A DNA stretch of 63,520 nucleotides, the filler included, from Hyphochytrium catenoides (lineage: Eukaryota > Protista > Hyphochytriomycota): the NCBI GenBank assembly GCA_900088475.1. It is 16 parts of 16 records of this genome, joined end to end, with 100 filler letters (N's around TTAATTAATTAA, not from the genome) between each part and the next. Parts side by side here need not be neighbours in the genome. Positions count along the whole stretch, not along the records: positions 31,895 to 51,062 come from FLMG01003952.1; 15 more parts are not named here. The stretch is one strand, 5' to 3'. Both the position numbers and the translations under genes were made by a program. Below, in pieces: positions 33,570 to 51,062 of this stretch; position 1 is the stretch's first letter, and each line of letters starts with the position of its first letter. Below the pieces are notes generated by a model. The model worked only from the letters and a program-made list of their open reading frames with translations. It ran no database searches and had not been told where the DNA came from.

Positions 33570-35828
33570 GTCTAGGGTAACGCTACCATCCTCCCTAACG
33601 AGGGATAGGAGAACTTCTCNNNNNNNNNNNNNNNNNNNNNNNNNNNNNNNNNNNNNNNNNNNNGACGCGCACGTTAGAAGAAACATTGGGAAAGCTGGCA
33701 GTTGGAGAAGGAAGAGCTGATAGATGCTGCTCAAGAAGGAGGAGAAAGTTCTCTCCTGTCATCGAGATAACCACCAGCGTCTTTCTGAAAGGGAGCTCCA
33801 TCATCACGTCTCCAGCAGTAAACGACGTGCCTCTGCCATAGATCTTGTTTCCTCGTATAAAACCGCTGTTGATAAGGGCGATGTCTGCTTTAATCTCCTC
33901 CCTCATTGCGTCTGCTAGGATATTAGCAAAGACGCTCTCTCTCTCCCTCACGACGCTCGCCCGGGTGTCCAGCTCTATTGGAAGGCTGTCTAAGAGAACC
34001 TCATCCTGCTGTACGCCGTCTTTTTCCGAGAGCTTAGACTTTGCTGCCTGAATAATCATGGCACAGCCTTCATCAGGTTCCTGGTGCTTGTTGGAGATAA
34101 ACGCCCAGGACAGAGAGACCGATACATCTCTCTTCTCTGTCTTCTCCCCGTTTCCCCCTCTTGTTGAGATAGAGATAGAGACCGAGAGATCTGCTACTCC
34201 CAAATATTCACAATCCATCCCGCACTTTAGGATGAGTGTGCCATTAACTAAGACGGCGTAGGGGTCATGGTCGTGCCCTCCTAGGATAAGGTCAATTCCG
34301 TTGACCTGTTTGGCCAGTGCCTTGTCTTCCGATAGATTGAGGTGTGTAAGACCTGCGACGATAATAAAGAGAGGCAAGCGACATCAGTGGAAAAGAGCGG
34401 TCTAATGGCTGGAGCAAATTAATGAACGGGTGAAAGAGCGAGGGGAAGAGTCAGTCTAGTCACAATTGACTAAGAAGACTGGCTCGTGTGAATGAAGAGA
34501 ACGGCACTAGCGGAGGACTGCCAGAGATTTATTCTCACCAGGGACGACAAGAGAGAGACGACAAGGGAGAGACGAGGGCTTACGCAGCCAACAGGTAACA
34601 TGTCAAGCAGGAAGATAATGATACACACACAAAGATGAGAGCTCTGACTTACCGACAACAATGTCCACTTTATCCTCTTCTCGGAGCTTCTTCACTGCCT
34701 TGGCAGCATGCTCCACTGCTGGCAAGAACTCTACATCCGGTCCCGGAAAGGACAGCTTCGGTGTGGCTGCCGTACAGACCCCAAATAATCCAATGCGAAT
34801 AACCTACGAGGGCAGTGGTTCACGCTGTCAGTGACTTGTTACTCAGCTCCTTCGACTGCACCTCTAGCACTTTCTCTCTGCCTTACTGTCATCCATCGCA
34901 CATAGAGTTACGCGCTCCCCTCCTTTGATTAAGCTTCTCAAGTCGCTCACCCGACTGTGCGTCACCTAAATGTAACATCTTCTCTCTTTTGCTACTTCAG
35001 GTCTGACGGTAGCTCACCTCTTTGTTGTCTCCCTCTCCTATGCTGTGGGTTAGCACAGCAGTGTCAAGCACTCCTTCAAGGACTTTGCCCGTTCTCTTGT
35101 CCCGAATGTTCCCTCCGAACCATTTGAACGCCGATTGCTGCACAGTCTCTATCAAGACATCAGCGCCGTAGTCGAATTCGTGGTTACCTGCGTCAAAGGA
35201 AGGAGGAAAGCGATAGAGAACAGAAAAGAGAGCGCGAGTTTGAAACGAGAGAGGCGAGCCAGAGAGAGAGTCAGCGAGAGATACACCGGAAAGCCCATTG
35301 AAAGGTTAGCGGAGGACGTGAAAGGATGGAAGCGAGAAGAGGAAGCTCGTGGATCAGGCAGCTCCAAGACATAGCGTAAAGGAGGAAAAAAGAGCTCACC
35401 ACACGTGACAGAGAGCAGCCAAGCGTCCAAAGAAGTGCATACCAAGAGCAACACGAGCGAGAAGAGTTACACTTACCGACACAAGCGAGATCTGTATGGA
35501 TGTACTCGAGAACTTGACGCACCCATTCGCCCTTTAGACCTTGCTGCAGGGCACCACCGCCCAAGACGTCTCCCAGGACCGCCAAGAGCGTATTTTCAGG
35601 AGATAAAGAACCCTCAGGATTGAGAGCTTTGTTTTCCTTTCTTACTTTCTTCAGCAGACTAGCAATCTGTGGATAGCCTCCTAGCCCTTGCTCTGAAGGA
35701 GAGACACTATAGATGTCGTTGAGAGAAAGGAAGCGAATGGTTCCATTGACGCGGCGCAGCGCATTGCCATTGCCATTCGCATTCCCTTTGTGAACCTCAG
35801 AGCTCTTCATGGGGCCCGTGCTTCCCAT
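33570..35828 (-). CDS. 5'-nucleotidase / apyrase family (metallophosphoesterase + 5'-nucleotidase C-terminal domain), multi-exon; 3' end uncertain across an N gap
   Basis: Motifs LNDIY, GDVLGG, GNHEFDYG (split by an intron), GLTHL, ILGGHDH, VRERESVFANILADAMR, DIALINSGFIRGNK, ELPF. No signal peptide. Confidence 0.92.
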
Positions 35829-37072: not shown

Positions 37073-39038
37073 TCATAGGTCAATAACAGTCCTTGACTCA
37101 ACATCCGTCCCGGCCGTCGCCTAAAAAGAAATCATTGGAGTTCAGTGCAGTAAGTCATAGAGAGGGGAACACATCCCATATTTAGATGACAAAGGAGTTC
37201 CTCAAGGACGAGCGGGCTAACGTGAAGGAAGCATGACACATGGACGAAGGAGAGCTGAACCTTAATGAAGTCTTCAAAGGTGATAACCCCAGCTTCTGGG
37301 TCTGATGAGGCCTCTTCCATGACTCTGTCTACGATCTCTTCCACTGTCTGCAGCAAGAGAATGTGAAAAAGGCTCCCATTGCACATCCGATCAGGGCTTG
37401 AAAGAGAGACAGCAGCGAGGAAGTATTAAACCCAAAGCTTCAGACGAGGCCACCAACTAACAGGAGAAGGATAGGGACTAGGGTTGCTAGCCCGCATTCC
37501 CAGCCTTTGCTGCAGAACTGTAGACCAAGGTTGAAGGAGTGGCAGAGTAGCTTCCACTGAGGACCTGAGAAGCGTCTTACCACGGGTTTCATGCCGTTTG
37601 CAGCTTGCGCAGGCTCAGCTTCTGCCTCTCCAAGCCTCGTGGTCCGGCGAAGATAGGTCTCAAGGTCTTTCTTCGATATCTTGCCGTCATCGTCAAAGTC
37701 ATGCATCCTAAAGGCAGCTACAATGTTCATGAGAGAAGTTAGTGGCGTGCACATTGTGGAACTATTATGCGGTCGCTTGGTCACCTACCTCTAAGTCTAA
37801 CTTCTCTATTCTGATAATGACTGAACTGTGACATGGAGACCATGAAGTCCTGTCGCCGCCCAAAATTAGAAGAAAGAGAAATGAATGAGAGGAGTGGTAA
37901 GCACAGAGACTAAATAGAGAGGAGAAGAAGGAGAAGGGGAGAGAGAAGGAGAGAGAGAGAAGAGAGGGCACAACGAGTTACTCAGCAAATAGTTTCTCTC
38001 TTTGTCTTGTCAAAGAACTGCTCTTCGTCTGTGTACCTTGAAGGACATGTTTCCTGTCTTTTTGTCGAACTCCAGACACTTCACGATCTGATCTTTCAAT
38101 GGATTGGCATGAATCGCTGCATATCGAGGAGAAAGGAGAGGAAGAGATTGAACAGAAGAATACGGCGAGAGAAAGAGAGAAGAGAAGAGAGGGACACAGG
38201 TTAATGGCACATCCTTAAGGGGAGAAGACGGTCTTCTCGACCAGGATGCAGTATCAAGTCATATGCGCCGGAGAGAGATGTGAGAGAACAAAAGTGCCTC
38301 AAGGTGTAGGTATAACAGCTGCAGCGGGAGCCAAAGAACTTAAGCACGCCTCAAACTGATAAGAAAGGAGAAGAAAAATGAGAGGCAAAGAGACAGTACG
38401 TGAAGCGGTGGAGAAAAGCCAGCAATATCTCACGCTGAAAGGGAGAGAGAGAGAAAGAGAGAGAAGAGAAAGAGAGAGAGAGACGAGAGAGAAATGGGGA
38501 GTAAGAGAAAGAGAGCGAGAGAGAATCAGAGACAGAGGAAAGAAAGAGGAGAAGAGAACTCAGAAAAGAGAAGAGAGGAGAAAGCTTAGTCCTTCTGACC
38601 AGGAATGGCACTGAATTCATGTAGAGCCATTTGTCCGTCTCCGCTATAAATCATAAACTTCGAATAGTATTTCACTATCTCTTTCTTAGGGTCTGGCGGG
38701 AAGAGAAAGAGAGACAGAGACAGAGAAAGAGAAGAGAGGATGAGACAAAGGATAAATAAAGGAAATGGCAGAGAGAGAGAAAAAACGCGAGGCAAGAGGA
38801 CCAACGGGAAAGACAGGGGGAGACAACACAGAGAGAGAGTTATGACCACAAGTGATAGATTATGGACATGGAGTGTGTAGAGAGAGAGAGAGACAGACAG
38901 ACAGACAAAGAAGAGACAGAGAGAGAGGGAGAGAGAGAGAGCGAGAGAGAGAGCGAGAGAGAGAGCGAGAGCGAGAGAGCGGGAGACAGAGAGAGAGAGA
39001 GCGAGAGAGAGCGAGCGAGAGAGAGCGAGCGAGCGAGC

Positions 39039-39072
<34 letters not shown>

Positions 39073-39281
39073 GAGAGAGATTGCTTACACCCAGTGATCA
39101 TGTGTATCTCTTCTATATCCTCAAGAGAGAGAGTACACACATCTTTCGTGGTGGCGCTCTTGTATGCCTGGCTCACCCAGTCTCTCAGTGCCCTCAGCCC
39201 GTTGGAGAGACTGGATGGAGCCTTGGGCGGAGCAGCAGCAGAAGCAGGAGGCGCTACTGCGCGCTCCTCGGCAGCCTTCAT
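37073..39281 (-). CDS. Calcineurin-B-like / CIB-type EF-hand calcium-binding protein, ~7 exons
   Basis: Exons: LSLEDIEEIHMITG / PKKEIVKYYSKF / AIHANPLKDQIVKCL...MSFK / DFMVSMSQFS...RL / AFRMHDFDDDGKISKKDL (EF loop) / VEEIVDRVMEEA...ITFEDFIK / ATAGTDVESRTVIDL*. Confidence 0.88.
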
Positions 39282-39478
39282 TGGCTTTAAGGAAGAGAGA
39301 GAGAGAGAGATCCTTCCTTCCTGCAAACAGCAAGACAAGGCCTAAAATTCCTGAAATGTGAAGGTACTCTTTCTAGGAGAGGAGATCGAGATTCCGCTAG
39401 GACGCAGGGGTAGAGCGGCGCTCTGTAGTCGAACAATTGGTTGAACGGGTAAGAAGATGGAGCAACATCGGAGCCACA

Positions 39479-40668: not shown

Positions 40669-43600
40669 TCAGTCCGCCCGAAGAGAGAGAAAAAGAGTCA
40701 TATCGCTCAGCTGCACAGGCGGTTGGTCTTTCACTCTTCCTCGTAGGACAGCGCAGAGATAGACGCCAAGAGAGAGAGAGAGAGAGACATCGCCATTAGA
40801 AAGTAAGTGCCCATAAGAAGGAGGGGAGACTGAGGCGGTAACAGTCCCTGCCTGCTCGGCTTCTTTCTCTCTTTCTCGTCCACGCAGAGGTCTTAATGCG
40901 CCCTCAAAATAGGAAGGAGTCGAGCTTGAGAGGGGAGAGAAGAGAGGGAAGCGATAGACTGCCAGGAGAGACTCTCCTAGGAAGAAATGCAGCGTGGCAT
41001 AGAACTGTGCGGTCGTGGACTTGGTAGCCGCAGAGGGAGAGAGACACGGAGAAGGGTCTCCTCTCTCTATCCGCAGCCGCTGGGAGAGAGTCTGTGACTC
41101 TCCCGCCACCAACCGGCAGCCTCTTGGAGCAGTGAAGAGTGTCTCCTTCCTCTGTTTGAGGCCTGAACTTGAAGAGAGAGAGACAACGCACGCCACTTCC
41201 CCTCCATCCTCTCCTCCTTTCCATACAAAGTAGCTGCGAAAGTGGTCACGAAGACAGAGTCCGGAGAGCCTCCCACCTCCGCCCCATGAGAAGGAGGCGG
41301 GGAGATCAAGAGAGAAGCAGAATTCTGCTGTCAAGGAAGCGCGGTCCGTTGAAGAGAGTGTGAGAGGCTCAAAATAGCGGCAGAGAGCAAAGCCTTCAAC
41401 AAATTCTCCTTCTTCCTCTTCCTCCTGCATCTCTCTCCCTCCAAGAGCTTTCGACAGCCCCGTCGGTGGCCTCTGAGATGGGAGAAAGCTCACAGTCCAG
41501 CTCTCTTGTGAGGAATCCGACGTCGACGATGAGAGCGCAAGAGCCTTTCTCTCTCCAACAGTGATGGCTTTTCTTCCTTCCTCTCTTTCTTCTTCTTCGA
41601 TATCTCTCTTCACGTTTTCAAGACCAGTCCAGAAGACAGTCCTCCAGCGTCCTTTCTTTGATGACGTGTCAAGAGGAAGAGGGTAAACCAGCACTTTTTG
41701 GACCAAAGGCTTGTTCATCTCTCTCTCGGGTCTACCCTCTTCTTCGTCCTGCCTCTCTCTATCTTCTTCGTCCATCGACCGGTTAAGATGACTCTGCAGC
41801 TCTCGTTTATCGTCAGCTCTCTCTTCTCTCTCTTGTGAGAGCCGGAGCTGAGTCTGGAACTGTCGGTATAGGCCAGAGACCCAATACTTCCGCCACATTT
41901 CTCTCTCCTCGCCATAGGTTCTCAAGCGTTCCGCGGTTACCTCATGAGGCGTATCCACCACGTAAAGGAAAGGAACCACGGCGAAGGAGAATGAGAGAAC
42001 GGAGAGAGAGAAGCAAAAGGATACCTTATCCTTTCCGTAGCCTGTGAAGCGGTTATCGAAAGAAGGCGCGTGAAGTCTGCTGAAGACGCCAAACGGCTCA
42101 TAACCGTCCGCATAGTCCACGTCGTAAGGAAGTAGGTCCTCTCTCTCTTCTCGGACGAGGAGACTCTCTCTCCCTTTCTCTCCTTCATTATGGGATTGTC
42201 CGCTCAGCCAGACGTCATACAATGTAGAGAAATGTCCTTCTGGATACTGGGAAGCGTGGAACGCAGTGACACTTCCTGGAGAACCAGAAGAGGCATAGAT
42301 GAGCAGACAACCAAAGGCTGAAGCGAGGGGAACACTAAGAGACAAAGAAGGTAAAGATCATACCTTCCGCGAAGCCAGCTCTAAGGTGCTCTTTGGCCTC
42401 TTTCCAATCCTTCGCGGCCAGAAGACTCTGAAGCTTTGGGTCTTCTGCGGTCTGTACTCCAGGGACTTCCACAGCAGGAGTAACCAGATATTTGTGCTCT
42501 TCAACGCAAAGGTGCCGCAGAGTTTCATAGGCCTCAACAGAGAGAAACGGACTCTCTGCTGGTCTGTCTGCCTCTTGACTCTCGCTCTGCGAGTCGTTCG
42601 TCCAAGAGAGAGGAGGAGGAGGGAGTACGACTGGGAGCAAATCGACGTCCAAAAGAAAGACGAGGTCCGTCTTTGCCTGCTGGAGCGCTATATTACGTAA
42701 GAGGTTGATCGGGAACGGTCCGGGGCTCTGAGCCGCGAGAGAGAGACACGAAGTCCTTCGCTGTAGAGAGACACAGTGCACATTTTAGGTATTCATCATG
42801 GGAAGAGGGCAGGAAATGAAGAGAGACAGGAGACACAAAGAGAGATTTGGAAGATCATAAGATCCCACCTCTCTCACAACCGCGATGTCGAGCTTCAGTG
42901 CCGCGTGGTGGTCCTCCACTTTGCTCTGTAATGCTTTTATTCTAGCGACAGAGCTCTTATAATCCGCAGTGCAAGGAACATAAATAGCTGCCGAGATGAC
43001 GCTGGGCTGGAGAGACAAGAGAGGCATTAAGGACAGAATAATGAGTGTGTCGGGCAGACAGAGGAGATAGCAAAAATTGGAAGAGGCCAAGACGCCATAA
43101 GACTTAGGAAGAGTGGCGAGAAGGTTCGTTTCTAAGGCTAATTGGCTCACCCACCAGCCGCATTGACTTAGCGGAAAGATAAAGATGAGGAAAGTCGAGA
43201 ACGAGGAACCGAGGGATGGATGCAAGGGTGGAAGTAGAAGAGTTGAGGCGGCGGAGACGACGTACCCATCGAGAGCACAGCCTCTCGAGCTGCTGAAGTC
43301 TGTCAAGTGAACAAGAGGTGATGATGGTGATCTCTACGGCTGATCGTCTTTTCGTGCTCTCTAAGAGAAGAGAAAGAGTGGGACGCGGTTCTCCCCTCCT
43401 CCAGCCCTGCTCACGGTAGATACAGCGGAGCTCATAGAACTGTGCGATTACATCTTCCTGTCTTCCTAGGAGCTGCTGTTTGAGTCTATCGTCGCCTTGT
43501 AGCCAGAGGCCGTGGACGCCTTCATCCTTCATTTTTCTATCTTTCCCGTGATATTGTCCCTGCCTTCTCTTGAGAGAGTACTCATACGGACTGAAGTCAA

Positions 43601-44386
43601 TCTCCCGTTTTGCCTAAGAGCCCGTGGGAGCGATAGAATAAGGGAAAATTGAAAGATTTGGGAGGATCAAGAGAGAGAAACGGCAAGCATGAGAGATGCG
43701 AAAGAGGGGCGAACTGGGACGGAACAAATGATGGAGATGGAATGAAAGAAGAAGCCGTTCTCTATTCGCGGATATGAAGCTAGAGACAGCTTATGGAGAG
43801 TTCAAAGAGGCAGAGGAAAGGAGAAAACTTGTGGCCAGATTCAGCTGGATAGGGAAGGGCAGCATGTCGAGGACATGGGAAGATTGAGGAGACCGTCCAT
43901 CAAAGGCGGAAGGTACCTGCTTGTAGAGGATAAGCACCTCCCTAAACCTCTCCCTTTTCCTTTTCTCTTGCCCTAGGGTCGCAAGATAGCTCTCCGACTT
44001 AGGGTGTGGAAGATGGAGGAGGCAATGTAGAGGGTCCACCTGGTAGCGGAACCCTAAGGCGTGGAGATGATAGCAGAAGATTGTCTTATTGCGCCCATAG
44101 CCAGAAAACCTGCAGTCAATGAGAAGGCGTACCCTTAGCCTAACCCAACTATGGATAGCTGAACTCTGTCTTTCGAGCATCTCTGTATGCTGCCACTCAC
44201 TGCACTGCACGAGCTGGCTCCAAGCCCTAAAATTTTTACTAGGTAATGGCTCACCTCTCGTCATACGGAGGAAGATAAAGCCTGAAGGCTATAAAAAACG
44301 GCTCATAGAGTTCCTCGTAGTCCACTGTGTAGACAGTAGCTGAGCCGAACCATCTAACCAGCATGGAGAAGGTTAGATCCAACAGA

Positions 44387-44433
<47 letters not shown>

Positions 44434-45328
44434 AGAGAGAGAGAGATAAGGAACGAGATCGCCACGAAAACGATGCAGTCCTCAGCCCCGAGGACATCCA
44501 ATGACGCAGGCTTCTCGTTTACCTAGAGTAATCTGTTGATCGATGGCCCTGCGGAAAGATATCAAGAGCGAAGGGCTGCAGCTGTCCCCTTAGGAGGGCT
44601 TCCGATATATATCTCTTGGAAGAGAAGAGCTCATCCAGACTGAGCTCAGGAGAAGAGCGAGGAGAGGAAAATCCAGGGGAGCCAGAGGGTTGAGGGGAAG
44701 CCTCTGCGGCTGAGGAGAGAAGATCAAAGGCAGGGATGACGTGAAGAGCCTTAGCGCCAGCACAGTCTTGCCAGAGCCCGATATAATGCTCACAATCCTG
44801 ATAGTATCTACTCAGCGCAGGATGAGGAATGAAGTCCACATCTACCACGAGGACCTAAACAAGGGAAAGATATAGGTTCAGAGACAGAAGATCCAACTTC
44901 TAACGCATCAATATGAGAGAGAGAAGAGAGAAAGAAGAGAGAGAGGAGAGAGAGGGGAGGAGGACGAAGGCGAAACAGTTGTTTCCTCTTTCCCTCCCCT
45001 CTTCTTGGACACCCGAATCCTTCTTCTCTGTCCCATTTGACTATCTCCCTTCCACATTGTCTCTTTAGCCGCAGAACCCCGATAGCTATGTGACTTACAA
45101 GGTCCGTGATAGCTAACTTCAAGGCAACATTCCGCAGAGCATTGATCGGGTACAGAGTGTCGCGGGAACGGCTCCAACATGGAGGCAGAGAGACCGTCGA
45201 AGTTAGAAGTTCGATGTGAACTTGATGCCCAGCGCTGAGGAAAGCAGTGAACGAAGACATGTTGCAAAGGTTGACATGAGGAAAAGAGAGAGTGAGTGAA
45301 AAATAAAGGAGAAAAGGGAAGGAACGAG

Positions 45329-45376
<48 letters not shown>

Positions 45377-45446
45377 CGGCGAGTTAGCGGAGGTAGCATG
45401 CGAGCGAGTGAAAGAAGGGAAGAGAGAAAGGGAGAGTGAGGGAGAC

Positions 45447-45477
<31 letters not shown>

Positions 45478-45854
45478 GAAGGCGCTTACTTGCGCTCCTT
45501 GGTCTCGGCAAAAATGCTGCAATGAGAGTGGTCAGCGAAGATGTGCTTAATAACTACCTTTCCGTCTTTGACACACAAGAGGACATGTTACTGACCGTGA
45601 CATCACGTCCTCATAGCTCTGACAGCTCACTCTACGTGGCAGGTAAACGGCTACAGCCACCGAGGACGTCCAAGTTGCAAGCTAAAGAGGCGATGAGAGC
45701 CATGATCGTCATGAAGGTCCAATGTAGTTGAAGAAGTGTGTACCTGTTGCTCAAGGTAAGGTAGCCGGTCGACGCTACAGTGTGAGACCAACGTGATGCT
45801 GGAACTCGGGACAAGGGCAGGAGCCGCTTTCCATGACTTGATTTTCTGCAGCAT
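40669..45854 (-). CDS. Multi-exon glycosyltransferase with two tandem GT49 (LARGE-GlcAT/B4GAT1-like) domains and a C-terminal PL14-like domain
   Basis: Domain 1: ITLVSHCSVDRL, YPINALRNVA, VDVDF, VIPAF, GH..TDY.RW, YEPF, P.YDERFSGYGRNK, HLPH. Domain 2: ITIITSCSLDRL, FPINLLRNIA, LDVDL, YPEGH, YEPF, FDNRFTGYGKDK. GT-AG borders at most exon ends; the start codon is tentative. Confidence 0.88.
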
Positions 45855-46641
45855 GGGTCTTTCAACGTGAGGTGCCTGTAGGGCAATTCACCTACGGACC
45901 AATGCTACGGGCCTATGATCCCGCTTGAGCGCGCCATACTCCGCCGTAGCTACAAATGACATGCTAGGACAGGCCGTGCGTCTCACGACCAAGGCAATGA
46001 GATTGGCAGCTCCTGCGCGTTCTTCAAGCTCTCAAGGACTGTCCCCGATGACGAGTCTCTATCTCTTCAGAACTCTGACGCACCGACCCCGCCGGGCCGC
46101 GCTGCCCAAAGGAAAGCCTTCAAAGGCTTCACATCCAGCACCAGAGTCCGCATCTCCCCGCCAAAAAAAAAAGAACAAATCAATACCACTGATAATCAGA
46201 GATGAATCATTATAGACCCTTATCCCCTATATCTCCATAGCTCCTCCAAAATCAAAACCAGCAATCGTTCTTTCTCAGTTATCGTATATAGTGATATAGA
46301 ATCACACATCAGTCCTACCTAGTGGATCCATCACCTCGACAAGAAGTCAGAAGGCAGAGGAGGCAGGGAAAGCCTCAGAAGACACTTTCTTCTTCATCAA
46401 CCGCGATCTTTCTTCCCTTCCTCTCCCTCGCTCACTGCGGCGAGAGAGAGAGGCAGACAGACGGGACAGGCAGAGATCAATCAATAATAGGAGAACTGAG
46501 GACAGACTGGCAGAGACTAGTGCCGTTACTTAGATAGGGGAGGAGGAGGCCAAGGGAGACACGCAACCGCTGTCCTGCAAATCAGGAGTGGAAGGCTTTC
46601 TTCTGGACTAAGCCTCGCGCGGCGGCGCGGATCTTGGAGCG

Positions 46642-49132
46642 ATGAGAAGAGCGGCGGCATCAGGTGTGTTGCTCTGACTTAGCTAGGCTTTATCTCTGGC
46701 CATTCAGGCTGGCAGCTGATAGTTTCCTCATCCTTCTTGTCCCTCATGTCTGTTGGGACGTGCAGCGCTTCGCTTGCCAATAAGAACGCCTCATGGATCT
46801 GGAAAGTCTCCTCGAGCTTGCGCAGGACAGGACATTTTATCAGTTCATTTGTTCCAGCCACAAGCACTTTCTCGGTCTCTTTCGTCCGCTGGACGGTGCA
46901 GTGCTCTGCACGGCGTAGCTCCCTGGAGACGCTTGGCCTTGCCTCTCTTTCGTCTGACAGATGGTCTTCACTTTCATCATAGTAAGTGACCAAACAGAGA
47001 GGATGTTAGAACTGTCAAAGGTTTATGAAGGGAGATAGCAAGAGGAGAATGTGTAGAAACGCGGAGACGACTGAGGAGTAGAGAAGCAAGGAAAGAGAGA
47101 GAGAAGGAGAGCGGGGACTGACAGAGAGGGAAAGAGACTGCAAAGTATCGACTCTACGTACTCATCGTCTCCCACGCCCGAGCAGGGAGCTTTAGTGATG
47201 ACGCTGATAAGAAGAGAACTAGAGTGCGGAAGAGGAAGGAGCAGATCTTTTCCTTTGTAAGGATCTGTCAAGCCTTTCCCTATCTTTGTCCTTGGGCCGG
47301 TGGCTCTGTACAACCCTGCTGCTCCTCGACGAACAGTGAAGCCTCTTGCCTCCTCTCAGCTCTTGCTGGGGCCATTCCCATGCTGCCTACTTCATCTTGG
47401 TGACACCTTTCTCTCCTTCGTCGCTCCTTCTCTCTGCCATTTCTCACTCATTTGCGACTTCGATTGCTGACTCTTTCTTCGGTGTGTGGCCCACAGATCG
47501 CGGACAAGAACCTGAATGTGGCGAACGGCATCACCATCTCGAGAATACTTGCCACGCCCTATCTCGGTTACCTCCTGCTCTCAGGAGACACCAAGTCAGC
47601 TTTCTTCCGTGCGTGCTCTCTTCTTACCTCCTTGTAGCTCGTCGCTCTCTGCGAGTAGACTCCTATACTTTTGTTTTCCTTCTGACTCATTGCCACTCTG
47701 ACTCGTTCTGAGCATGGCCCTTCTCTCTTCTGGCACTGCTCTCCCCTCTTCCAGCCCCTTCTTCTTCCCTCCAGCTGACGGATCTGCCGTAGTCTTCACC
47801 GCGGCAGGAGTGAGTGACTGGCTGGATGGCTATGTTGCCAAGAACTATAATCAGCAGGTAATTTATGCATCAGAAGTGTCCAAAATTGAAGGGGAGCGCA
47901 GGACTTGAGGAGACGGAGGGATAAAGGACAGCGAGAGATAGAGAACGATGGGAACACGCTGTCAGCCGCTGTGATGGAGAGAAGGAGAGGCGGGAGTGTT
48001 TGTGTGTCAAGGAGAGAGAGGGGGGAGAAGGAGAGGAAGGAGAGAGAGAGAGATTCCTCAGGCTCAGGCGCTTAGTCTTATATGCTAAGCTAGAGGATAT
48101 CCTTCTACCTCTTCCCATCGGTGCTTTCTTTCTTTTATTTCCAAGGGTATAACTATCACTTACCTCTCTCCCTCCCTTTCCTTCCTCGTTGTCCTTCCCC
48201 CCGCCGTGCCCGCAACCCACGGTTCCGTCGCATATCAACAGTCGGTCCTGGGCTCGTTCCTGGACCCCCTGGCCGACAAGTTCTTCGTCACCACTGTCTC
48301 TCTTTGCATGGCCGGCTCCTCCCTTCTCCCTCTTCCTCTCGTTTCCCTCATCATCGGAAGGGACCTGCTGCTGATCGGTGGCGCTGTGATGCACAGAGCC
48401 AAGACGAAAGCTCCAGACGCGAAGTTCTTTGATACCACGGACGCCTCCGTCTTCCACGTAGAGCCGTCTCTCCTCAGCAAGGTAACAGCGCGCAAAGAGA
48501 CACACTCCAAGTTGCCCCAGCTTTTTGGGGCGATTGTCTGCTGATGTGCGCTCTCCTCTCCTTTGCATCGTTCTGAGTGTCCTTGCCATTCTGAGTTCCC
48601 ATCTTCTCAATTCTTGGTTGTCAAAGCATCTGTGTCCTTGACCTTTTCCCTCGTTTCTGCTCTCTCCTTTGCAGGTGAATACGGCGCTCCAATTTTCTCT
48701 GATGGGCCTGGCGATGACCAACGCCGTCTGGGAGATCCCAACAACACCGTTTATTGATGGACTCTGGTGAGACATGCTCATCTGACCTTCCGGGTCTCTC
48801 TCTCTCTCTCTCTCTCTCTCTTTTCTCGCACCTTCCCTCTCTCTACCTCCTTCCACACGCCTTAGATCTCATCCCGCACCTTTCTCCCTGACAATGGTCC
48901 TCTGTCTTGCTTCCTTTCCTTAATGACTCCTCATTGTGTTAGCAGTAACACTCAGACCAAAGAACTTGGCGGACACTGTCTCTCCTGCTAACATGCTTCT
49001 CCCATCATCGCCTTCGAATCTTCCCTTTGTACGTTTCGCAGCTGGACTGTCGGTGCTACTACTGTCCTCTCAGGAACCTCATACCTACGAGACTACCTGG
49101 CAGGCAAAGGCGCCTTAGTCAAGGGCAAGTAA
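46642..49132 (+). CDS. CRLS1: Cardiolipin synthase (CMP-forming; CDP-alcohol phosphatidyltransferase family), multi-exon
   Basis: NVANGITISRI / SDWLDGYVAKNYNQQ / SVLGSFLDPLADK (D-G-x2-A-x9-G-x3-D-x3-D type signature) / LIIGRDLLL / EPSLLSKVNTALQ / TTVLSGTSY...GK*. Arg/Ser/Ala-rich N-terminal exons; the 5' structure is tentative. Confidence 0.88.
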
Positions 49133-49444: not shown

Positions 49445-51062
49445 TCAATCTCTTCCGCCCATTAGCGCGCTCCTTGCTTCGTCATCTTCAGGGTTAGCTC
49501 GTCGTCTTCTCCTGGCAGCCACAACCGCGATAGAGACAACGAAGGCAAGTAGCGCCAAGCTTCCAGTGATAAGAACAATACGAGGGATGCCGAAGAATTG
49601 CTCGTCGTCGTCGATTCTCCTGAAGCCTAGAAGGAAAGTTCTGATTTCCATGGGAGATAGTGTGATGATGGAGGAGCGCAAGAGATGTCTCTCTCGCTCT
49701 CTCTTTGGCCTCTCGTTGTTCTTCTCTCCTGCCTCTTTAGCGCCCGACCAATCTAAACGCTGGACCTCGTCCAATCGCTGATTGGTGCTGATTGAGGTCT
49801 CCAGAATGTCCGATAGAGAGAGAAGAGAGGGAGTGAAGAGCTGCTGAAGATCCACACTTACGGAGCCATTGCCCTTCTCATCTGAGGTCTCATAGCTGTG
49901 AGCCAGACGGAGAATCAACTGATGCTCCGACACTTTCTGCAGCGTAACGAGGTGCACTTGCGGGGGAAGAGGGGAGGCGAGAAGCGAGAGGTGGTCAATA
50001 TCCACGGTACTGTTCTCCCGTGAGGCCTCTTTGGAAGAGAGAGACAACAAAGGCTGGTCCCCTCTGACTCTAGAGGAAAGTGACGAACTTTCAAGGGAAG
50101 AAGCAGAATTGGGAGGAGAGGGAGAGAAGAAGAGCTCCGGAAGCGTCTGCAGCTGGTTACTAAGCGCTCTGTAGCTCTCCATTGACCTCTCAATAGTGTC
50201 TAAGGTTATCCAGTGGTGACCCGTGACCACCAGCCCCTGGCACTGGGCGCCAGGTGCCTGATCTCTTGGGTCTTCTTCACACATCTGCTCGTTTAGATTC
50301 TCGTCAACGCCTTTCTGATCATCGTGATAGAGGCGGCGGTGGACCATGATCTCGACCTGACGGAGAAGAAGTCGTTATTGCCCATGCAAAAGAGTTAGAC
50401 TGTGGAAGGTGAAAGTGCAGCTATCAAGCCCCAGGAGAGAAAAACTTGGCTAGCAGGTTAGGAGAATGAGAGAGAGATAGAGAGAAGAGAAGGAAGCATC
50501 CTAATTCTCCTACCTCACCATCCACCAAGCTCGTGCCTCCTTGTGCTCGATCGACCTGTCAGGGTAAGAACAGGCCAACAGGAAGGCCCAGACAGACAGA
50601 ACTTAGACCATAAAGCTCATAGAGCGGATGGAAGCAAAAGAAAGCCCAAGGAAAGCTCAGAGAAGAGAGAGTTCGTCTAGACTACAGCCGAGATAGAGTT
50701 AGGAAAGCCTTCATACATGGACTGAGAAGCGTGCGTTCTTCTGCTTGTCTTGGATGTACATGAGAGAGGTCAGAGGATAATAGTTTGCAGAGACAGGATC
50801 TGTCACAGCTAGCGGCCAAGTTGCGCGTTTATTTCTGTGAGACAAATAGCAAAAGCAACGGAGGCATCGAAGATTAGCCCAGACACAAAGAGAGGGAGAT
50901 GAAGGAAAGAGAGAGAGATGGAGAGAGGAGAGAAAGAGGATTGCTTGTAGCTAGAGGTGAAGCTCAAGTTAGGCAATGTGTACTGACCTCTGGCGCTTCT
51001 GCATATCTCGTCCGTTCGCATCTGTGTACCACTCTGCCGCATTATTGAGCTCTGTGTGCCAG
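49445..51062 (-). CDS. GH38 lysosomal-type alpha-mannosidase, C-terminal half (partial), with C-terminal TM helix
   Basis: WYTDANGRDMQKR / PVSANYYP / VDRAQGGTSLVDGE / VEIMVHRRL..DD.KGV.E.LNE / LPPQVHLVTL / LRLAH.YE / LSPMEIRTF. Confidence 0.93.

Follow-up and report, generated by a model that had tools for sequence, protein, structure and literature searches.

A predicted tandem GT49 glycosyltransferase with a PL14 lyase-like C-terminal domain in Hyphochytrium catenoides and its relatives in distant eukaryotes

The window analysed here, a stretch of 63,520 nucleotides (nt) joined from 16 parts of the Hyphochytrium catenoides assembly GCA_900088475.1, carries a predicted coding region on its minus strand between 45854 and 40669 (ATG at 45854, TGA at 40671-40669; record FLMG01003952.1), the product of which would combine two GT49 glycosyltransferase domains with a tail related to polysaccharide lyases of family PL14. 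The DNA at the locus has about 50% G+C and short (CT)n-rich introns and is eukaryotic in character. Exons were anchored by tblastn alignments of homologues (P numbers; named members are given below), and frame-preserving GT-AG introns were then enumerated; Pfam, sequence and fold searches were run exon by exon or on the open reading frame (ORF) of 558 residues that holds the last exon. The frame-consistent GT-AG model comprises ten exons, which with the stop codon amount to 3471 nt or about 1156 codons, and an optional, frame-compatible mini-exon of 27 nt at 45516-45490 would bring the exon count to 11. The predicted features are as follows, with splice junctions marked by a slash.

45744-45854, minus strand: exon 1, with the start codon and the first part of GT49 domain 1 (ITLVSHCSVDRLPYLEQQ); donor CAG/GTACAC; tblastn of P0001 and P0006, splice scan
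45558-45681, minus strand: exon 2 (LATWTSSVAVAVYLPRR..., LATWTSSVAVAVYLP...); acceptor TTTAG/, donor AAG/GTAGTT, phase 1; three-frame reading
45099-45220, minus strand: exon 3 (YPINALRNVALKLAITDL); PF13896 profile 111-132, tblastn, splice scans; alternative acceptor 45234
44523-44854, minus strand: exon 4 (VLVVDVDFIP...), with the DxD of domain 1 (DVD 44842-44834); PF13896 profile 136-218, splice scan
44255-44353, minus strand: exon 5 (WFGSATVYTVDYEELYEPFFIAFRLYLPPYDE); PF13896 profile 233-260, tblastn with 50% identity to P0001
43917-44109, minus strand: exon 6 (FSGYGRNKTIF...LILYKQ), end of GT49 domain 1; donor CAG/GTACCT; PF13896 profile 256-317, tblastn with 64.7 bits to domain 1 of P0001
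43266-43613, minus strand: exon 7, with the linker between the domains and the first part of GT49 domain 2 (VEITIITSCSLDRLQQLERLCSRW); acceptor CTCTTAG/; PF13896 profile 1-23
42869-43006, minus strand: exon 8 (PSVISAAIYVPCTADYKSS...DIAVVRE); tblastn of P0001 residues 58-201 and 472-610, splice scan
42364-42760, minus strand: exon 9 (FPINLLRNIALQQAKTDLVFLLDVDLLP...), with the DxD of domain 2 (DVD 42649-42641); PF13896 35.2-35.7 bits (cutoff 27); alternative acceptor 42727
40669-42275, minus strand: exon 10, end of GT49 domain 2, charged linker and PL14-like domain; inside the 558-codon ORF 42345-40669; PF13896 43.7 bits over residues 24-130
41641-41852, minus strand: charged linker rich in Glu, Arg and Asp, ORF residues about 165-235; translation
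40672-41640, minus strand: PL14-like beta-jelly-roll domain with low-complexity insertions, ORF residues 236-558; hhalign, family profile against 5GMT, AlphaFold model, VIA-align
41221-41283, minus strand: core motif GGGGRLSGLCLRDHFRSYFVW with Arg359, Arg370 and Tyr372; translation, alignment to 5GMT

Two GT49 domains and their joining

Between 45218 and 40669 the GT49 profile PF13896 (gathering cutoff 27 bits) was traversed twice by exon-sized ORFs.

45099-45218, 44519-44848, 44251-44382 and 43791-44264, minus strand: ORF matches of GT49 domain 1 (profile 111-132, 136-218, 233-260 and 256-317, respectively)
43266-43613, 42335-42781 and 40669-42345, minus strand: ORF matches of GT49 domain 2 (profile 1-23; 108-145 with 35.7 bits; 197-291 with 43.7 bits)

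Domain 2 thus exceeded the cutoff on two exons; the four exon pieces of domain 1, scored singly, reached 13.6-19.7 bits, each below 27, and were collinear over profile 111-317 and placed in order by tblastn with homologues. Each domain contains a DxD (in VVDVDF and LLDVDL), and further GT49 motifs were found in pairs (YPINALRNVA and FPINLLRNIA; FSGYGRNK and FTGYGKDK). The two domains are 37% identical over the 70 residues that align, and no GT8 match was present among the Pfam results for the locus ORFs. On this evidence, the protein is predicted to comprise two GT49 domains of the GT-A type, each with an intact DxD. The initial annotation had obtained two GT49 domains with their own DxD (VDVDF, LDVDL), PIN.LRN.A and F.GYG..K motifs from about nine stitched exons; both domains and all motifs were recovered in two collinear PF13896 series, and the exon count had to be raised to ten, with exon 2 (45681-45558) having been overlooked. 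This exon on its own gave no Pfam match; it provides the W.G.IS.A.Y.P stretch of domain 1, comparable to VISAAIYVP in domain 2.

That both GT49 domains would be encoded by a single transcript was deduced from homology and in-frame splice sites. In an alternative arrangement, which we hold to be improbable, two adjacent genes would be present, namely a single-GT49 gene ending at an in-frame stop at 43791-43793 (the last intron being unspliced) and a GT49-PL14-like gene starting from the ATG at 43532. The ORF of exon 6 does continue to the stop at 43791 and the next ORF is opened by this ATG; however, stop and start are only about 260 nt apart, and the two halves are linked by an in-frame intron of 303 nt, across which exons 6 and 7 are joined in phase 0 with a good donor (CAG/GTACCT) and a pyrimidine-rich acceptor (CTCTTAG/). 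In addition, the stretch preceding GT49 domain 2 corresponds in alignments to the region between the two domains of homologues, and P0001, P0004, P0005 and P0006 have both GT49 domains on one chain, P0005 being an assembled transcript. The single-gene model was kept. Within it, the fusion of GT49 domain 2 to the tail needs no splicing, because both lie in one uninterrupted ORF of 558 codons, and a single tblastn alignment of P0011 spans from GT49 into the PL14 core within exon 10. An intron inside this last exon was rejected: P0050 (408 residues, Logan contig), which matches the tail directly (E 6.2e-10) and shares GGRLPGL and CFRSFFCW with it, remains aligned as far as the stop of the ORF, a SLSLSL stretch included, so the entire tail with this stretch is taken to be coding.

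At the other end of the predicted protein, the first 37 residues are not hydrophobic, and in ten homologues checked no hydrophobic segment was found outside the DxD strand, the N-termini extending 20-40 residues before the first GT49 domain. This agrees with the earlier reading that a signal anchor is not present. An upstream exon encoding such an anchor was considered and rejected, since the region offered only a weak, low-complexity hydrophobic ORF at 46529-46350 and the homologues are without an exon of this kind.

The C-terminal tail compared with PL14 lyases

Behind the charged linker, the tail motifs were located at 41631 (WTGLENV), 41499 (WTVSFLP), 41283 (GGGGRLSGL), 41241 (FRSYFVWKGG), 41202 (GEVACVV), 41103 (GESQTLSQRLRI) and 40992 (LHFFLG), so that the linker followed by a beta-rich domain of about 320 residues lies where it had been described. 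Direct searches gave little: the PL14 profile PF21294 did not match the locus tail; a word-index protein search with the 558-residue ORF, whole or as region 225-475, returned no match within a length window of 307-976, which excludes relatives of 1150-1350 residues, its candidate list being filled by low-complexity words of the ORF; the same search with domain alignment returned four matches only; and megablast against phage records returned none. In an exhaustive search with HMMER, the 558-residue ORF had 480 matches among 1.84 billion representatives; none exceeded 36% identity, so the organism and its near kin would seem not to be represented in this set. Starting from the PL14 domain of the Riccia fluitans homologue, jackhmmer pulled in locus ORF residues 334-425 with E 3.8e-16. 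When the tail together with P0050 was compared by hhalign with seven Pfam-positive PL14 domains, a probability of 92.7% (E 4.2e-7) was obtained over the F.W..GG.LPGL...W signature. A family profile of 18 GT49-linked sequences matched the PL14 lyase AkAly30 (5GMT) with E 1.9e-12 over 166 positions, a fungal PL14 protein with E 1.2e-9 (in a set of 5.8 billion) and the chlorovirus lyase vAL-1 (3A0N) with E 0.094, and the C-terminal strands of the tail align with the FYGG...WA.P.D end of PL14. By these comparisons, the predicted jelly-roll tail, fused to GT49 domain 2, is homologous to PL14 lyases. The proposed PL14 ancestry was thereby sustained by the jackhmmer and hhalign results and by PF21294 matches of homologues that share the GT49 fusion; of the profile checks suggested, PF13896 matched directly, above the cutoff in domain 2, and the PL14 homology of the locus was seen through the profiles of its relatives rather than by PF21294 itself.

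Modelling of the tail from its single sequence with AlphaFold was unusable (predicted local distance difference test (pLDDT) 31.8). With an alignment of 20 sequences, a model with pLDDT 71 and a predicted template modelling score of 0.72 was obtained, consisting of an all-beta core (pLDDT > 90) and disordered acidic insertions. The top Foldseek matches of this model were jelly-roll polysaccharide lyases (PL36, PL28, PL14, PL7), and VIA-align gave Z scores of 14.6 for the PL36 lyase Aly36B, 13.9 for 5GMT and 13.6 for 3A0N (187-194 residues aligned, root mean square deviation 3.6-4.0). The nearest ESM Atlas cluster was 100% PF21294. A PL14/PL36-type jelly roll is supported by the model, in line with the fold anticipated for the tail in the initial annotation, including its likeness to vAL-1. 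It is very unlikely, in our estimate, that the tail has no relation to PL14 and is instead a lectin or spacer with a generic concanavalin-like jelly roll, with a chance likeness in motifs and a structural match that reflects a common fold. The lack of a direct Pfam or PDB match of the locus tail would suit this explanation, as would the legume lectins, calreticulin and GH16 enzymes that the structure searches also returned, with Z scores of about 10-11. Against it, jelly rolls other than PL14/PL36 score at most about 11 and so remain about 2.5 Z units under these two families, the hhalign match covers the PL14 signature motif itself, the alignment extends to the C-terminal strands, and the best Atlas cluster is entirely PF21294.

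Catalytic residues were mapped through the 5GMT alignment, the chain numbering of which is offset by 12 from the published one (checked on Cys115, Gly118 and Cys124; PMC8618178).

AkAly30 Lys99 (vAL-1 K197), GGK context: Arg359 at the locus, in GGGGRLSGL
AkAly30 Ser126 (vAL-1 S219), CFSLRLMW context: Arg370 at the locus, in FRSYFVW
AkAly30 Arg128, CFSLRLMW context: Tyr372 at the locus, in FRSYFVW
AkAly30 Tyr140 and Tyr142, ELYAY context: no Tyr at the locus in the 16 residues after Trp375

For the arginine and the two tyrosines, roles in the PL14 active site have reportedly been described in a study of AkAly30. Lys197 and Ser219 are reported to be essential in vAL-1 (PMC13709232). The active-site loop of about 16 residues between GGKLPGL and the following strand is deleted at the locus, the spacing from GL to Trp being 12 residues as against 28 in AkAly30, where subsite -1 owes its shape to a disulfide (Cys115-Cys124) in this loop (PMC8618178). 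Loop deletion and loss of Tyr-x-Tyr are common to all 18 GT49-linked relatives, a third of which (6/18) keep the Lys. In the GT49-linked family, the strand leading up to the invariant Trp (41221-41241 in the window) has the consensus L-R-x-S-F-x-W, as against F-S-L-R-L-M-W in canonical PL14; Arg and Ser have thus exchanged positions, both on one face of the sheet. The losses that had been noted for the locus (GGK to GGR, Arg and the Y-x-Y pair) were all found, and the catalytic Ser is replaced as well. With Lys, Ser, Arg and Tyr-x-Tyr all exchanged and the active-site loop missing, the domain is PL14-derived but would not be a PL14 lyase.

The domain could still be enzymatic, either as a lyase that uses other residues or as a lyase-derived enzyme that modifies the chain made by the transferases, by trimming or as a polyuronate C5-epimerase, and we rate this as unlikely. 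Lyases have turned into epimerases in other fold families (dermatan sulfate epimerase, alginate epimerases); the Arg is kept on the cleft strand, albeit swapped with Ser, some family members keep the Lys, and a sulfotransferase is added in certain relatives (below), as in a modification pipeline. In the locus domain, however, substitutions are found at the positions of Lys, Ser, Arg and the two Tyr, both the active-site loop and the G.WH motif are missing, and the family alignment shows no conserved candidate for an acid-base pair. A non-cleaving PL14-derived domain is the reading carried forward below.

Relatives and surroundings of the gene

Tandem GT49 domains together with PF21294 (cutoff 27 bits) were identified in P0001 (Riccia fluitans, 60.4 bits), P0003 (41.7), P0006 (38.7), P0004 (Mesostigma, 31.8) and, with a PF21294 score below the cutoff (22.2), P0005 (Entosiphon); PF21294 with a single or partial GT49 was identified in P0011 (46.4), P0007 (a MMETSP transcript, 45.4) and, again below the cutoff, P0118 (22.3). 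The relatives are 20-36% identical to the locus; P0001, P0003, P0004, P0006, P0007 and P0011 exceed the Pfam PL14 threshold, which the locus does not. Named members are the following.

Riccia fluitans (liverwort), KAL2633662.1: GT49-GT49-PL14-like
Mesostigma viride, Mv00120: GT49-GT49-PL14-like
Entosiphon sulcatum (euglenozoan), transcriptome: GT49-GT49-PL14-like
Brown algae, CAM9139538.1 and CAM9218187.1: single or partial GT49 with PL14-like domain
Discosporangium mesarthrocarpum (brown alga), P0012: recruited to the PL14-like family by jackhmmer
Sphacelaria rigidula (brown alga), P0171: cluster-mate of P0014, which was itself recruited by jackhmmer

The domain order of the locus is shared by the Riccia, Mesostigma and Entosiphon proteins, which likewise have no anchor and show the same loop deletion; the GT49-GT49-PL14-like proteins in the databases are the true family of the locus gene. 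When domains were compared singly, domain 2 of P0001 matched locus domain 2 with 100 bits (its domain 1, 68 bits) and its domain 1 matched locus domain 1 with 64.7 bits (its domain 2, 44.7 bits); for P0006, domain 2 was best on locus domain 2 and domain 1 gave a tie. This same-numbered matching makes the tandem look older than these lineages. From these alignments, the full GT49-GT49-PL14-like architecture recurs in distant eukaryotes, and the locus appears as a divergent member of a conserved, unstudied eukaryotic family, of which this architecture is the fullest form.

The search for the same architecture elsewhere, as had been recommended, thus yielded a liverwort, Mesostigma and a euglenozoan, together with GT49-PL14-like partials in brown algae. 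In the papers searched, no description of a GT49-PL14 fusion was found, GT49 appearing there in count tables of carbohydrate-active enzymes. The initial annotation had known of no description of the architecture, which holds for the papers searched but not in the sense of unseen, since automatically annotated members are present in public protein sets; the Riccia protein is auto-named 'Polysaccharide lyase 14 domain-containing protein' in UniRef.

Two further proteins, P0057 (Picozoa sp. COSAG04) and P0085, have two GT49 domains, a PL14-like part (by jackhmmer only) and a C-terminal Sulfotransfer_3 domain, a layout that looks like a polymerase with a modification line for a putative sulfated acidic glycan. 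The closest relative of the tail was found in a Logan contig (L001:163-1759, SRR32051687), in which the end of GT49 domain 2 and the PL14-like part differ in frame and are about 60-80 nt apart; this frame change suggests a short intron at a place where the locus has a continuous ORF.

In the surroundings of the gene, the following ORFs gave domain matches.

49445-50347, minus strand: GH38 alpha-mannosidase C-terminal domain
48206-48544, plus strand: CDP-alcohol phosphatidyltransferase
37440-37784, minus strand: EF-hand
33595-34377, minus strand: 5'-nucleotidase C-terminal domain

A run of 44 N lies at 33620-33663. Long (CT)n/(GA)n microsatellites occur in introns and intergenic DNA (45330-45500, 44395-44470 and 38800-39300) and produce spurious SLSLSL and ERERER ORFs on both strands.

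Proposed function and comparison with known systems

Taken together, the data are best explained, with moderate confidence, by a single gene, its product being a soluble protein of GT49-GT49-PL14-like architecture with about 1150 residues, acting as a two-site transferase with a non-cleaving module that holds uronic acid. The polymerase and chain-binding function is inferred by analogy. The two GT49 domains would act alternately, each adding its own linkage or sugar, which is proposed because they differ from each other and match the same-numbered domains of relatives, clearly so for domain 2 and in one of the two homologues compared for domain 1. To our knowledge, all characterised GT49 enzymes (LARGE1/2, B4GAT1) transfer glucuronic acid (GlcA) from its uridine diphosphate (UDP) derivative; since UDP-GlcA is the donor of every one of them, at least one of the added sugars would likely be GlcA. 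The product would then be an acidic repeat or a polymer containing uronic acid, and the pseudo-lyase domain may serve as a non-cleaving module that keeps the uronic-acid chain or the acceptor beside the catalytic sites. PL14 subfamilies include endo-beta-1,4-glucuronan lyases (PMC11890756), which fits a uronic-acid ligand for the PL14-like tail.

Several points weigh against this interpretation. The exon joins are predictions, and an AG acceptor (CCCTACAG/GCACCT, 45855-45880 in the window) precedes the proposed ATG by 24 nt in the same frame, and a 5' exon may thus have been missed. The last 343 residues have no Pfam family (E up to 10), PDB sequence match or ESM Atlas match, and the tail of the locus is more degenerate than that of its relatives, for example in the absence of the G.WH motif. 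The structural model is not independent of the sequence evidence, because it was built from an alignment of PL14-like sequences, and PL36 scores as high as PL14 in VIA-align, the two families being hard to tell apart (PMC11890756). The donor and the product of the GT49-GT49-PL14-like proteins are proposed by analogy. Finally, with the signal anchor absent, the substrates would be met in the cytosol, unlike those of LARGE, and a secreted wall polymer would be harder to explain; what is most puzzling is the lack of a membrane anchor, which points to a cytosolic or peripheral rather than a Golgi enzyme.

Among known systems, the animal matriglycan polymerases LARGE1 and LARGE2 (GT8 and GT49) have two GT-A domains per chain, as is predicted for the locus, one of them a GT49 with DxD, and the alternating addition by which they build a repeat containing uronic acid would be a logic shared with the locus, for which it is proposed. 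At the locus, in contrast, both domains are GT49, the GT8 xylosyltransferase and the N-terminal transmembrane anchor or stem are absent, and a C-terminal PL14-like domain is added. The beta-1,4-glucuronyltransferase B4GAT1 has the same PF13896 domain with DxD, PIN.LRN and GYG..K motifs but, unlike the locus protein, is single-domain and membrane-anchored, and it acts in priming, as opposed to the polymerisation proposed for the locus. In the soluble or peripheral polymerases PmHAS (Pasteurella) and K4 chondroitin polymerase (E. coli), UDP-GlcA and a second sugar are used in alternation by two GT-A domains; these enzymes are bacterial, have GT2 domains and are without a lyase-like module. With the PL14 lyases vAL-1 (3A0N, 3GNE; chlorovirus) and AkAly30 (Aplysia), the locus domain shares the jelly-roll fold and strands of the F.W..GG.LPGL...W...FYGG type; it differs from them in being fused to transferases and not secreted alone, in its long acidic insertions and in the loss of the catalytic residues and the disulfide loop.

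We know of a GT49 function only in the animal dystroglycan pathway (LARGE, B4GAT1), and protists and algae have many GT49 genes without an assigned role. In brown-algal genome papers, GT49 is named an 'unexpected' family (PMC11468063). The locus and its relatives define a testable family with two GT49 sites, a lyase-derived non-catalytic module and, in some members, a sulfotransferase. In a further-reaching scenario, to which we give a low chance, the family would be an anchor-free assembly line for an acidic polysaccharide (sulfated where the sulfotransferase is present), its lyase-derived domain acting on the nascent polyuronate as chain-length ruler, processivity clamp or C5-epimerase, and GAG-like or glucuronan-like polymers would be made on a route independent of EXT, CHSY and HAS. 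If the proposed polymerase function is true, it would explain how some eukaryotes make uronic-acid polymers, including those of the glucuronan type that are cut by chlorovirus PL14 lyases, and would provide a clear case of a degradative enzyme fold recruited as the binding domain of a synthase. The liverwort homologue suggests that a land-plant relative might be open to genetic study.

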